A DNA stretch of 64,000 bases from Rebecca billardiae RCC1528 (GCA_965240325.2 OZ251230.1:2170001-2234000); one strand, 5' to 3'; counted from the first letter of the stretch, positions 12,156-17,717 are shown. Notes: generated from the letters alone by a model not told the origin. Made by a program: numbers and translations.

Positions 12156-13214
12156 TCACTTCTTCTCGCTCGGCGCCGCCCACTGCACGGAGAGGATGAG
12201 GTGGTCGTAGCCGTGGCCGTTGAGCTTGTCGATGGCCGCCTGCCCATCCTCGCGCTGGTAGAAGGTGATGAACGCAAAGCCGCGCGACAGGCCGGTCTCG
12301 CGGTCTTTGGCCAGGTACACGCGCTGCACCGAGCCAAAGCGGCGGAAGAGGTCGCGCAGGTCGGCGTCGCTCACGTCGTCCGAGATGTTGGACACGCGCA
12401 CCGTCGTCGAGTCGTCGCGCTCCTGGAAGTTGGCCCGATCCATCCGCGAGCCATCGGCATTGCGCATGCTCGGCGGCACGTACCGCCCCGAGCCCGCCCC
12501 ACCCGCCGCGAGCGCCTCGAGCGAGGAGCCGGGCTTGCCCCCAGCTGCGCCCGCCACGTTCGCCGCAGAGCCGGAGATGCCCTGCTTCTCGGCCCACTCG
12601 CGCGCCGCGGAGCCGGAGTACGTCGTGCGCGAGCCCTCTGGCTGCGGGTCGAGGCCCGCCAACGGGTCCGCCTGCTCCGTCGGCCGCGCGCTCGGCCGCC
12701 ACGCGACGAACGTGCCCTGCTGCGCGTTCTGGAAGGCCTTGTCCGCCGCCTTGTTCGACTCCTCGAGCTGCTTCGACTTGGGCTTCAGGTCGAGCGTCTG
12801 CTCGGAGATGTCGAAGGATGTTGTGGACTCGCCCGAGAAGGTGAAGCCCGCGCCGTGGTAGCCCGCGGGCTGATCGGCGCACTTGCCAAACTTGGCCCAC
12901 TCCCGCCGCGCGATCACCGCCTTCGGCAGCCGCACCTGCTTCTTCTCGACGCGCACGGTCTGCACACACTTCACCTTGCGGTTGTGGTCGTTGATTTTGA
13001 AGATGGTGACCTGCTTCAGGCCGTCGGCGCCCACCTCCGTCTCGGTGCGCTCGAGTGTCCGCTCGCCCTGGCCCTCCTCGCCCTCCTCGCCCTCCTCGCC
13101 GTCGTTCTCCTCGACGTCGTCTGCCCACTTGGACTTGGGCGCCTCTTCGACAGCGCCAGCAAAGGCCACCTTCGGGCCCGCGTCCCCACCCTCGCCATCG
13201 CGGAATTCAGGCAT
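12156..13214 (-). CDS. EIF3G: Eukaryotic translation initiation factor 3 subunit G
   Basis: KWADD, AVIARREWAKFG, YVPPSMR, C-terminal RRM (RVSNISDD...LAKDRETGLSRGFAFI...LNGHGYDHLILSVQWA). Confidence 0.95.
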   Translation of the reverse strand: MPEFRDGEGGDAGPKVAFAGAVEEAPKSKWADDVEENDGEEGEEGEEGQGERTLERTETEVGADGLKQVTIFKINDHNRKVKCVQTVRVEKKQVRLPKAVIARREWAKFGKCADQPAGYHGAGFTFSGESTTSFDISEQTLDLKPKSKQLEESNKAADKAFQNAQQGTFVAWRPSARPTEQADPLAGLDPQPEGSRTTYSGSAAREWAEKQGISGSAANVAGAAGGKPGSSLEALAAGGAGSGRYVPPSMRNADGSRMDRANFQERDDSTTVRVSNISDDVSDADLRDLFRRFGSVQRVYLAKDRETGLSRGFAFITFYQREDGQAAIDKLNGHGYDHLILSVQWAAPSEKK

Positions 13215-13688
13215 GCTCAGCTGCGCGTTAGCACGCACGAACGCTCAGTCCAGGCGGCAAGGCGTGGACCGAGGACGCTTGTCCACGATGCCCGCCGCGT
13301 ACGTGTCGGTCGATTATTCGTAGTCGCACCCTCGTCAACAAAACAAATGGAATCTAAAATCCCGCGAGCCGGTATTTTCGGATGCTGGCATTTTCTTTTC
13401 CCGGCGCTGCCCACGGACCAGGCCGGTCGGGCTGATCCGGAACACGGTGCGTGAAGCAGCCTGCCAGCTTCCGATGCTGGTAACGCTGCCGCACAGACGA
13501 GATTTCGCGTGGTATACAATGCAGGTTATGAGGCGTCTGACTCCGAACTCAGTCTGGCTTACTTGTTCGGCTCCGGGACTGCAGTCGTCATCGGCATCGG
13601 CTGAGCATGAAGACAGGCAATGCGCCTGCGCGGCCGCGGCGGGCGGCACGGCTCACGCGGGACCCTCACCTGATGCCGGGCGTGGGCC

Positions 13689-15004
13689 TCAGTGCTCACC
13701 GTCGACCGGGATGTTGAGGCTCCTCTCGAGGCGAGTGCGCAGGTGATCCGTGGCGCCGTCGTGCACCGTGCTCAGGTGCGCCTTGAAGTGTCGTGCAACC
13801 AGTTGGCGGCAGTCGAGGATCTGCGCGTCGGCGAGCGCGCGCATGCGGCACGAGCGCTCAGTCAGCGACTCCGCGCGCAGGGCACGCTCCGGGGCGGGGC
13901 AGCGGGGTGGGGTGGGGCGGGGCGGGGCGCGCGCGGCGGCGGGGCGCGCACCTGGTTGGTGATGGCGTGCGGGTCGATGATGTGCTGCTCCTCCTCGCCG
14001 TCCGCGCGCGCCCTGCTCACGAGCTTGACCTCCTTGCCCAGCACGCCGTTCAGGAACTCCTCCGCGGTGCCAAAGCCCTGGTCGCCGCAGAGGAAGCCGG
14101 ACTGCGCGAAGAGGCTCTCGAGCCACAGGTGGTCCGCGGGCAGCTCGTCGCCGTCCGCCTTGCGCGACATGGCGCGGAGCGTCTCCTTGATCGCCACGTG
14201 CAGCGTCAGCTTCTTGAGCAGGTCGAAGGTCGCGCGGCGCGTGGGCGTCGAGTCGCCGAGCGCCGAGCCGTCAAACGCGGGCATCGCGCGCTTGGCGCCC
14301 TCGTCGTCGGGCGAGCCCGAGCGGACGACCTCGTCGTGGTGGCGCCAGAGCTCGATGTCCTCGTGCGCGATCAGGTCGAGGTCGGCCGTCAGCTCCTCCG
14401 CGATCTCGTCGCGCACGCGCAGCAGGGAGGCGCCGATGCGGTCCGGGTAGATGGTGATGTCGTGCGTCGCCTCGCGCTGCTGCTCCATGTACGGGTTGCC
14501 CGGCGAGCCGCGCCACGAGGTCGAGCCCCAGGACGCGCGGACGGAAACGACGACCGGCGGGCTGGCGAGGAGCGTGTCGATGTACTCGGTGGGCTCGGCG
14601 TGCAGCGCGTCGAAGCCGTGGTACCGCTCGATGCCCGCATGCTCGTGGAAGTTGGCGAGGAAGCCCGCCGACGGCCCGTCGCGCAGCTCGTGCAGGTAGT
14701 AGATCTGCGTCTGGACGGCGCGCTGGACGAGGAAGCGGTCGAGGAGCGCGTTGTGCCGCGCGAGCTCCGGCGACGGGGATGCGCACTGCTCGTCTCCGCT
14801 GCTGCTCGGGCCCATGGCCATGCGCACGCGCGCGCCGTTGCGCGCGCGCGCGCGCGTTCGCAAGATGCCCGTGGGGTCGGTGGCGGCGCGCGCGGGCGTG
14901 CGTGCGAGGGGAGTAGGCCGAAGCGTGACGCTGCGCCCGTCGAGCACGCCGACGAGCATCAGCAGGAGCACCGCGCGGTCGAGGAAGCTGGTGAAGGAGC
15001 GCAT
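13689..15004 (-). CDS. Putative plastid-targeted protein with two tandem RbcX-like helical modules; exons 15004-13952, 13820-13689
   Basis: Signal peptide plus Arg/Ala/Thr-rich transit-like region; FLVQRAVQT..L.E..D...FL..F...EYI..L...LLRVRDEIAEEL and LTLHVAIKETL..M...WL......EEFL..V.....ILDCRQLVA; GT-AG intron 13951-13821. Confidence 0.7.
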
Positions 15005-15519: not shown

Positions 15520-17717
15520 ATGGCGGCCGCCGCCATCACGCTCTCGGACGTCGAGCGTCTCGCACGTGAGCGGGGCGTCATCATGCCCCCCGATGAGCCG
15601 CAGACAATGGACGACGCGTCGGAGGAGCGTTTCAATCTCGTCGTCGCCATCGGCCTCCTCGCCCTGGGCAGCACGTTCGTTGTCTCGCACAGCCTCGAGC
15701 GCATCGGCGTCACGTGGCTGCCCGAGGCAGCGATTGGCATCTTAATGGGTGTGTCGTGCTCGGCGCTGCTCTTCGTGTTCCACAGCGAGCTGATCGACCT
15801 GCTCCAGTTTGACTACGAGTTCTTCATGGTGTGCGCGGCCGGCGCCTCGCGCTGTGCGCACGTGCGCGAGCGATGTGCCCGCTCGCACGGACCGAGCGTG
15901 AGCCGCGCGCGACCCAGCGTCGGCCGCGCGGTGTGCGGTGTGCGGTGGGCCATGGGCCGCGCGCACCGCGCGGTCGGATCTGGCCCACGCTCTCGCACGC
16001 CCACCGCGGCGCGCCGCCCACCCCGGCCCGCGCCGCGCGGCAGATCTGGCTGCTTCCGCCGATCATCCTGGACGCCGGGTACACGATGCAGCGCGGCTAC
16101 TTCTTCGGCCAGTTCGGCGCGATCCTGCAGTTCGCCTTCGTCGGCACGTTCGTCTCAGCGCTGGTCGTGGGCGGCGTCGTCTTCACGGCGGGGCAGCTCG
16201 GCTGGTGCCACGCGCTCGGCGGCCTCGACTCGCTCACCTTCGGCGCGATCATCTCGGCGACCGACCCTGTGACGGTGCTCGCCGTGTTCTCGCGGCTCGG
16301 CGTCGACCAGCACCTCTTCTCCATCGTCTTCGGCGAGAGCGTGATGAACGACGCGGTCGCCATCGTGCTGTGCGAGACGCTGCTCTCGTTCCGCTCGACA
16401 CACTGCACGCCGCGCACGGTGCTCGACGCGTTCGGCGTCTTCGCCGGCATCTTCGCCGGCTCGGTCGCCACGGGCGTCGTGACGGGCGTGCTCTCGGCGC
16501 TCACGTTCAAGGCGCTCGGCCTCGTCGGCGGCGAGCACGTGATCACCGAGACGGTGCTGTGCGCGGTGCTCGCGTGGACCGCGTACTACGTGGCGGAGGC
16601 GCTGGGGATGTCCGGGATCGTGGCGATCCTCTTCTGCGGGATCGTGATGGCGCACTACACCATCGACAACCTGTCCGCTGGCGCGCGCGCGCACACGGCG
16701 CTGCTCTTCAAAAGCCTCGCCACCTTCGCCGAGGCGTTCATCTTCGTCTACCTCGGCTTCGCCGTCTTCGCGTACCCGATCTACCAGCACACCGTGTGGC
16801 GGCTCGTGGGCGTGGCGATCGTGGCGTGCCTGCTCGGCCGCGCGCTCAACATCTTCCCCAACACCTGGCTCATCAACGCCTGCCGCGGCGGCGGCGATGC
16901 GCCCAGGGGCGCAGCCGGCGGCGCGGCGCGCGCAGACGCCGGCCCAATCTCGAGCACGTGCGCCGGCGTCATCTGGTTCTCAGGGCTGCGCGGCGGCGTG
17001 GCCTTTGCGCTCGCCACGTACGCGTACTCGCGGAATGTCTTCCCAGAGCACGGTGCGCGCGCGCGGCGCTGCGCGCCGGTTTGGGCCTGCCGACGCGCGG
17101 TCGGCGGCGGCCCGCTGGCCACCCACACGTGTGGGCTCACGACACGCGCGACACCGCGCGCGACACCGCGGCGCGCGTCAGGCGATGGGCTCGCCATTCT
17201 GCAGGCGACGCTGCTGATCGCCGTGCTGTCCATCTTCGTGCTCGGCGGCTCGGTCGAGTGGCTGGCCGTGCGCCTCGACCTGTTCCACCGCGAGCCCGAG
17301 GCACCGCCCGCCATGGGCGAGGGGGCGAGGGCCAAGCTCTCGCGCCTCGAGGAATTGGACGAGTGCGCGCCCGAGCGCGCGCGCCGCGAGGAGCCCCGTG
17401 CGGCTCGCCGCTGGTCGCGTCCGCCGCGTCCCCAATCACGGCCGATCGCACAGCTGACAGCATGCCGATGCCCGCACCGATCGCGCGCGCGGCGGTGCGC
17501 GCCGTGCGTCCGCAGGCGGTACATCCGACCCCTCCTCACCATCAGCGCCGTGCACGCGCACCACGAGCGCTTCGAGGACAGCGTCTCTGCACTGGCGGCC
17601 GACGACGAGTGTGCGACTGTCACGTCACTGGCAAATGCGCCGACGGGTGGCGCGGGCGACGACGCTGGGCTGCGGAGCCGAGGAGAACGGGACGCGGTGG
17701 TCATTGAACTGACCTAG
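15520..17717 (+). CDS. Na+/H+ exchanger (CPA1, NHE/NHX family); exons 15520-15828, 16044-17052, 17182-17362, 17516-17717
   Basis: LPE, FF..LLPPIILDAGY, ISATDPV, FGESVMNDAVAIVL, SGIVAILFCGI, GRALNI, SGLRGGVAFALA; three GT-AG introns. Confidence 0.95.

Follow-up and report, generated by a model that had tools for sequence, protein, structure and literature searches.

A 64,000-nucleotide stretch of DNA from Rebecca billardiae RCC1528 (GCA_965240325.2 OZ251230.1:2170001-2234000), here called the window, carries on its minus strand, at positions 13689-15004, a gene whose product is almost certainly a plastid protein made of RbcX homologs in tandem and a member of a family conserved in the red lineage. 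The gene belongs to the nuclear genome of a haptophyte and has two exons, and its spliced product is 394 residues long. To our knowledge, the only role of RbcX is in the assembly of RbcL, the large subunit of Rubisco (PDB titles 3rg6, 2wvw, 7xsd). Taking all observations together, we lean towards explaining the window protein as a plastid tandem RbcX pseudo-dimer that would assist the assembly of form ID RbcL. All positions are counted from the first letter of the window.

The likeness to RbcX, which the initial annotation had proposed from a consensus of the family, emerged clearly when family profiles were used. A word-indexed search with the window protein retrieved only six relatives, with 50-57% identity, the sole named one being Diacronema lutheri KFE25_011485 (Haptophyta, Pavlovophyceae). 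A 7-sequence profile, made from the window protein and these six relatives, was then searched against 1.84 billion cluster representatives. It collected 474 clusters at E<=1e-3, of which 214 also passed E<=1e-10; the majority were 300-450 residues long and covered both modules. A match of the 7-sequence profile to DotY was at chance level (E 0.6) and was discarded. The family profile was an alignment of 68 full-length members, which was also cut into separate alignments of module 1 and module 2. When the 68-member profile was compared with PDB sequences, the eight best matches were all RbcX (2py8, E 1.7e-5; 2peo, 1.3e-4; 7xsd, 2.1e-4; then the Synechococcus ORF134 series and 3q20). In addition, the Pfam RbcX family (PF02341) was matched by 29 of the 68 members, with a best E-value of 8.3e-7, and no other Pfam family was matched by more than two of them.

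Each half of the protein gave the same answer, as the initial annotation had anticipated. RbcX was the sole PDB match of the module 1 profile (1.5e-4) and also of the module 2 profile, where nine sequences including both Arabidopsis proteins were matched (best, 2py8 at E 2.7e-6). Pfam RbcX was likewise the top recurrent family for each module, with 22/68 module 1 pieces and 10/68 module 2 pieces. The internal similarity of the two modules that the initial annotation had noticed was borne out by hhalign with the 68 sequences, which aligned module 1 and module 2 over 124 columns with a probability of 98.8% and an E-value of 9.7e-17; the same comparison with 7 sequences only was not significant (P 0.029). 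The match between the two module profiles indicates that the protein is an internal duplication of an RbcX-like unit. Among language-model neighbors, which we used as leads only, an RbcX cluster came first for each module, at a score of 0.87 and with 188 and 192 features in common.

Structures were modeled for P0005, a full-length homolog that is 53% identical to the window protein, and for module 1 of the window protein itself (residues 76-242). AlphaFold2 gave a mean predicted local distance difference test score (pLDDT) of 87.4 and a predicted TM-score (pTM) of 0.83 for P0005 with a 68-row alignment, and a pLDDT of 89.0 and a pTM of 0.79 for window module 1 with its own alignment. In the P0005 model, the two modules have one layout: helix 1 is long, two short helices and a beta-hairpin follow, and helix 4 is long and broken. 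This is the arrangement of RbcX with a hairpin added. Module 1 of the window protein (14318-14770, minus strand; approximately residues 79-229), assigned from its model together with the structural search and the profile, comprises helix 1 with F91-L-V-Q94-R-A-V-Q-T, helices 2 and 3, the hairpin, and a long helix 4 with L-L-R-V-R-D-E-I-A-E-E. Module 2 (13692-14239, minus strand; residues 256-394, interrupted by the intron) was assigned from the profile and from superposition of the P0005 model; it comprises R256, helix 1 with F-D-L-L-K-K-L-T-L-H-V-A, the W-L-E-S-L-F segment, a short hairpin, and helix 4, which begins at P345 and contains R356.

Comparison of these models with known structures, the check that the initial annotation had suggested, placed RbcX exclusively at the top for both window module 1 and P0005 module 2. 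Foldseek with P0005 returned E-values of 0.19 or worse, with probabilities of 0.9-1.0 for RbcX, and with window module 1 it returned RbcX probabilities of 0.85-0.99. After the Foldseek candidates for P0005 were superposed with VIA-align, the best 17 were all RbcX (Z 6.1-7.6), and unrelated chains came next at Z 5.1. The 17 entries were from cyanobacteria, Arabidopsis (RbcX1 and RbcX2) and Chlamydomonas (RbcX-IIa). RbcX matched residues 201-338 of P0005, which correspond to module 2, with 104-113 of 105-118 residues covered. When window module 1 was compared exhaustively with 48,161 PDB representatives, only five chains reached Z>=8 and all of them were RbcX, namely 3q20 from Thermosynechococcus (Z 10.5), 2peo from Anabaena (Z 10.1), Arabidopsis RbcX1 4gr2 (Z 9.9), Arabidopsis RbcX2 4gr6 (Z 9.1) and Chlamydomonas RbcX-IIa 5bs2 (Z 8.9); the next chain scored 5.4. 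The five superpositions span 103-114 of 105-118 residues.

RbcX is an obligate dimer that forms through helix 4. Based on this property, on the pTM of 0.83 for P0005 and on an independent ESM-Atlas model that matched two modules at once, we infer that the modules of the window protein probably pack against each other through their long helices 4 as an intramolecular pseudo-dimer, in the way that the two chains of the RbcX homodimer do. The ESM-Atlas model, from a diatom cluster of 414 residues, matched both modules simultaneously with a TM score of 0.70 over 274 residues and a root-mean-square deviation of 3.2 Å. The pTM and the ESM-Atlas match also suggest that the arrangement of the modules in the two-module chain would be fixed.

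Some 25 residues link the two modules, and at the end of this linker stands a conserved S-S-P-x-R motif, whose arginine is R256 in the window protein. The loop insertions that had been pointed out in the initial annotation were modeled as a beta-hairpin that in each module follows helix 3 and precedes helix 4, and no counterpart was present in the aligned RbcX chains. In module 1, the insertion comprises residues 151-185 (14450-14554, minus strand), as defined by DSSP strands in the models. The loop of this hairpin reads G-S-P-G-N-P-Y, and its N170 and P171 belong to the small number of positions that hardly vary in the family. Because a hairpin is present in both modules, the insertion is probably older than the duplication. 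Conservation differed between the modules in helix 1, which is strongly conserved in module 1 and looser in module 2. The module 1 helix contains a sharply conserved Q-R-A-x-Q-T segment, with Q94 in 59/68, R95 in 61/68 and Q98 in 59/68 members.

The gene model was built from the strand sequence, the table of open reading frames (ORFs) and the homologs. An ATG at 15004 opens a minus-strand ORF, and every peptide string quoted in the initial annotation was present in a minus-strand frame. Exon 1 (13952-15004, minus strand) has 351 codons, from Met1 to Gln351, and terminates with ...HAITNQ at 13952. It is followed by GT, after which the frame enters a C-rich stretch before a stop codon. The intron (13821-13951, minus strand) is 131 nucleotides long, has GT-AG ends and, when read on the coding strand, a very high content of C, with CCCCGCCCC/CCCCACCCC runs. 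Its terminal AG at 13822-13821 precedes exon 2 (13689-13820, minus strand), which begins ILDCRQLVARHF..., reads ILDCRQLVARHFKAHL...DGEH and, with 43 codons and a TGA at 13689, completes helix 4 of module 2. Since 131 is not a multiple of three, the two exons lie in different DNA frames, as they do in the ORF list.

This two-exon model, including the splice that had been proposed to complete module 2, is supported by the homologs. The sequence NQ-ILD across the splice junction is read without interruption in four of the six closest homologs (P0002 and P0004-P0006) in the alignment. The gene models of P0003 and P0007 retain an unspliced insert exactly at the site of the window intron, and both translate through it. 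The insert at this site indicates that the intron position, after N-Q and before I-L-D, is conserved among related haptophyte genes. The N-terminus of the window protein aligns with the starts of P0005 and P0006, and its C-terminus coincides with the ends of the homologs. An additional 3′ exon, considered on account of a GGTGAG just before the stop codon, was dropped because the homologs terminate at the same place.

Nuclear-encoded proteins of complex red plastids have a presequence in which a signal peptide precedes a transit peptide, and the +1 cleavage position is often occupied by Phe (the ASAFAP motif). The leader of the window protein, in which the initial annotation had recognized a signal peptide and an Arg/Ala/Thr-rich region, has a hydrophobic core and then a basic, hydroxylated stretch. 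The signal-peptide-like N-terminus (14936-15004, minus strand; approximately residues 1-23) was placed by heuristic hydropathy and has a hydrophobic core at residues 12-20, with a mean Kyte-Doolittle value of 3.26 over 9 residues. The transit-peptide-like leader (14771-14935, minus strand; approximately residues 24-78) was placed by composition, and residues 24-80 are rich in R/A/P/S/T, with 10 basic and 4 acidic residues. The equivalent region of P0005 is disordered in the AlphaFold2 model, where the first 40 residues of the protein have a pLDDT of 46-54. No Phe follows the predicted core of the window protein, where LDG is succeeded by RSV; in P0005, LDA is succeeded by FAAS.

We extended the targeting scan to the family with a crude heuristic of hydropathy, composition and small-x-small followed by F rather than with a trained predictor. 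An N-terminal hydrophobic core was found in 114 of 156 leader-bearing members, and in 68 of these 114 the core is directly followed by small-x-small and F, as in TASA-FVP (diatom) and ACA-FAP. These leaders make it very likely that the tandem RbcX family is plastid-targeted, and the window protein itself is predicted from its sequence to have bipartite targeting, with a signal peptide and a transit-like leader. We also noticed a (GC)n dinucleotide run at approximately 14838-14862 (minus strand) within the region that codes for the transit peptide, where it encodes R-T-R-A-R-A-R-N; this run is a likely source of variation in leader length.

Named members of the family were found in four phyla, in agreement with the red-lineage origin that had been deduced for the DNA. 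They come from Rhodophyta (Rhodosorus marinus and Porphyridium purpureum), Cryptophyta (Proteomonas sulcata and Rhodomonas salina), Haptophyta (Diacronema lutheri, with two genes, and Haptolina ericina) and Ochrophyta (Fibrocapsa, Stauroneis, Nitzschia, Fistulifera, Cylindrotheca, Pseudo-nitzschia and Cyclotella). The four phyla, which comprise red algae and groups whose plastids derive from red algae, are lineages with form ID Rubisco (PMC9833100). All named members are annotated as hypothetical or uncharacterized save for one cluster name, and none has a precomputed Pfam domain. The exception is the UniRef cluster of P0266, a homolog from Pseudo-nitzschia multistriata, which is named 'Selenoprotein O', a name that looks mis-propagated. 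In a maximum-likelihood tree of the 68 members, the window protein and KFE25_011485 formed a clade with 100/100 support, and the second Diacronema gene, KFE25_006915, grouped with Haptolina and diatoms in the opposite half of the tree. The placement of the two Diacronema genes in different halves indicates at least two old paralog groups.

The neighboring genes offer no functional hint for the gene. The next gene downstream (12156-13238, likewise minus strand) is a housekeeping one and encodes the translation initiation factor eIF3g (Pfam eIF3g, 1.3e-15; RRM_1, 2.9e-17). ORFs on the plus strand at 15520-16272 and 15938-17707 had no Pfam match at E<=1e-3. The ORF that starts at 15520, some 500 bp from the start of the RbcX-like gene and divergent from it, has hydrophobic segments like those of a membrane protein, and the gene model here is probably multi-exon. 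The nearby ORFs also include a CUE-WW-UIM protein.

Red-type (form ID) Rubisco fails to assemble in tobacco chloroplasts and other heterologous hosts, which has been ascribed to unknown chaperones (PMC9833100, PMC6508576). RbcX and Raf1 are said to be absent from organisms with red-type Rubisco (PMC9833100, PMC6508576). We found no published account of a tandem RbcX family in the openly searchable literature, in which subscription journals are mostly not covered. From the analysis as a whole, the most economical function for the window protein would be one in Rubisco biogenesis, as a clamp that, like RbcX, holds red-type RbcL while it assembles, and we consider this proposition to be evenly balanced. 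According to it, the fused modules would act in the stroma of the plastid as a single-chain 'RbcX dimer' whose asymmetry is permanent. The single-chain dimer would bind an extended segment of form ID RbcL, and RbcL dimers or octamers might thereby be stabilized until the small subunit displaces the tandem RbcX. An altered groove, with F/Q in one module and L/H in the other in place of Tyr/Tyr, and the G-S-x-x-N-P-Y hairpin loop may be adapted to red-type RbcL and its extended C-terminus. A symmetric RbcX dimer binds one asymmetric RbcL tail, and fusion would let the two halves specialize, which matches the tight conservation of helix 1 in module 1 and its loose conservation in module 2.

Several observations weigh against reading the window protein as an RbcX that acts on RbcL, and some of them concern the homology itself. 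The homology is visible only through family profiles and structure; the window protein alone matched no Pfam family, even at E<=10, and no PDB sequence, and exon 1, exon 2 and the module 1 piece likewise matched no Pfam family even at E<=10 or E<=1. For helical proteins, Z values of 6-10 lie in a range that VIA flags as possible by chance. If these blank searches are taken together with the Foldseek E-values of 0.19 or worse and with the middling Z values that helical models often reach, the protein could be a generic helical bundle that resembles RbcX by chance. We regard this as extremely improbable, since the PDB profiles, the Pfam matches in 29/68 members and the exhaustive structure search converge on RbcX for both modules, and a clear gap separates Z values of 8.9-10.5 from 5.4. 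That the matches are restricted to RbcX, cover the full chain and agree with the sequence profiles removes the concern about helical Z values, and the profile, Pfam, hhalign and structural results together effectively rule out a chance resemblance. The remaining objections concern function. According to reviews, the beta-hairpin of the red-type small subunit replaces RbcX, and red-type form IC Rubisco assembles without RbcX (PMC9833100, PMC6508576). In addition, the groove is altered, as determined from HMMER alignments to RbcX and from column counts over the 68 members. The positions aligned with Tyr17 and Tyr20 are F91/Q94 in module 1 (F in 37 and L in 24 of the 68 members at the first position, Q in 59 at the second) and L266/H269 in module 2 (L in 39, with a second position that varies among Q/H/R). 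Tyr17 and Tyr20, which are mutated in PDB 2pej (Y17A/Y20L), are the RbcX groove residues that hold the C-terminal peptide of RbcL. Q29, a residue mutated in 2pek, aligns with Y or L, and E32 aligns with a position that is E in 27/68 members; the T-N of E-T-N-P is replaced by R-D. Both modules retain the helix 2 W-L-x-x-F, the proline that starts helix 4 (P187 and P345) and the arginine of V-R-E (R198 and R356). This pattern of retained and replaced positions indicates that the fold and the dimer-forming helix were kept and that the peptide-binding chemistry was changed and became asymmetric.

The loss of the RbcL-tail-binding tyrosines from both modules is what would be expected if an RbcX-derived scaffold had been repurposed for a non-Rubisco plastid client after the red-algal ancestor swapped form IB Rubisco for the proteobacterial red-type enzyme, a possibility that the initial annotation had also named. 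The cyanobacterial-type RbcX would then have become redundant, and the duplicated and fused gene would have survived with a new binding partner. Such a history would also fit the finding that the strongest conservation in the family falls partly on elements that are not part of RbcX, the G-S-x-x-N-P-Y loop and the S-S-P-x-R linker, the in-built RbcX substitute that red-type Rubisco is held in the literature to carry, and the two ancient paralog groups, which permit sub-functionalization. However, an RbcX fold is not known to serve any other client, the range of phyla in which we found the family coincides with the lineages of form ID Rubisco, both modules have kept the helix 4 L-A-x-R-x-x-x-x-R-E-x-I-A-E and W-L-x-x-F, and the failed heterologous expression of form ID Rubisco implies missing factors. 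We consider repurposing unlikely, although it is the strongest of the competing explanations. The changed groove residues would also fit a different mode of binding to Rubisco itself, in which the protein would serve a non-assembly role, for example as an adaptor that brings Rubisco to the pyrenoid or, together with the CbbX activase, on the extended C-terminus of red-type RbcL. In the green seaweed Ulva, the pyrenoid matrix contains an RbcX-like protein that has a motif for binding Rubisco (bioRxiv 10.64898/2026.07.16.738900), which indicates that RbcX folds can serve pyrenoid-linked roles. The family nevertheless occurs in red algae and pavlovophytes whatever their known pyrenoid type, neither repeated linkers nor sticker motifs were observed, and no CbbX linkage was found among the neighbors in the window. 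We judge a non-assembly role to be improbable, though less improbable than a chance resemblance to RbcX. Assistance in form ID RbcL assembly is the reading that we retain.

What is new here is an RbcX fold in a new architecture, in a new lineage and with changed binding residues. A conserved tandem RbcX homolog in four red-lineage phyla contradicts the published absence of RbcX from them. It also appears that a chaperone gene has survived although horizontal transfer replaced the client that it first served, and that a homodimer has been turned into a fused pseudo-dimer able to evolve asymmetrically. No known CO2/O2 specificities surpass those of the form ID enzymes of red algae and diatoms, which have long been a target of crop engineering. 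The family supplies concrete candidate genes for co-expression with form ID RbcL and RbcS. If the proposed function is true, the absence of the family from heterologous hosts would be one reason why red-algal and diatom Rubisco never assembled in Escherichia coli or tobacco. We tentatively suggest that the family may be the missing lineage-specific assembly factor of form ID Rubisco, with two paralogs per genome in haptophytes, and that it could descend, as one asymmetric chain, from a cyanobacterial RbcX that was kept and re-tuned after the Rubisco swap.

Among known systems, cyanobacterial RbcX (PF02341; 2pem, 2peo, 2py8, 3q20 and the RbcL-bound 3rg6) shares the four-helix fold, in which helix 4 is long and kinked. 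The sequence features in common are x-L-T-x-x-A-x-x-T in helix 1, W-L-x-x-F in helix 2 and L-A-x-R-I-x-x-V-R-E-x-I-A-E-E in helix 4. Cyanobacterial RbcX is a homodimer of chains of 110-155 residues, whereas the window protein has two modules fused in 394 residues, adds a hairpin to each and has Tyr17/Tyr20 replaced. The cyanobacterial gene lies in an rbcL-rbcX-rbcS operon and its client is form IB Rubisco; the window protein is nuclear-encoded with a signal-plus-transit-like leader, and its host uses form ID. The RbcX proteins of the green lineage (Arabidopsis RbcX1 4gr2 and RbcX2 4gr6; Chlamydomonas RbcX-IIa 5bs1/5bs2) are likewise nuclear-encoded and plastid-targeted, and two diverged paralogs per genome are also a feature of plant RbcX. 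They superpose on window module 1 with Z 8.9-9.9 at an identity of only 9-15%. Unlike the window protein, they are single-domain homodimers that act on green-type RbcL, without the hairpin insert and without the tandem fusion.

The beta-E/beta-F hairpin of red-type RbcS has been described as an 'in-built RbcX' and proposed to stabilize the RbcL8 core (Joshi et al. 2015, as cited in PMC9833100). This hairpin has a proposed RbcX role but is a part of the small subunit and not an RbcX homolog. Because the field knew it as a substitute, RbcX was assumed to be neither necessary nor present in the red lineage. As judged from the family profiles, an RbcX homolog persists in the red lineage despite the RbcS hairpin.

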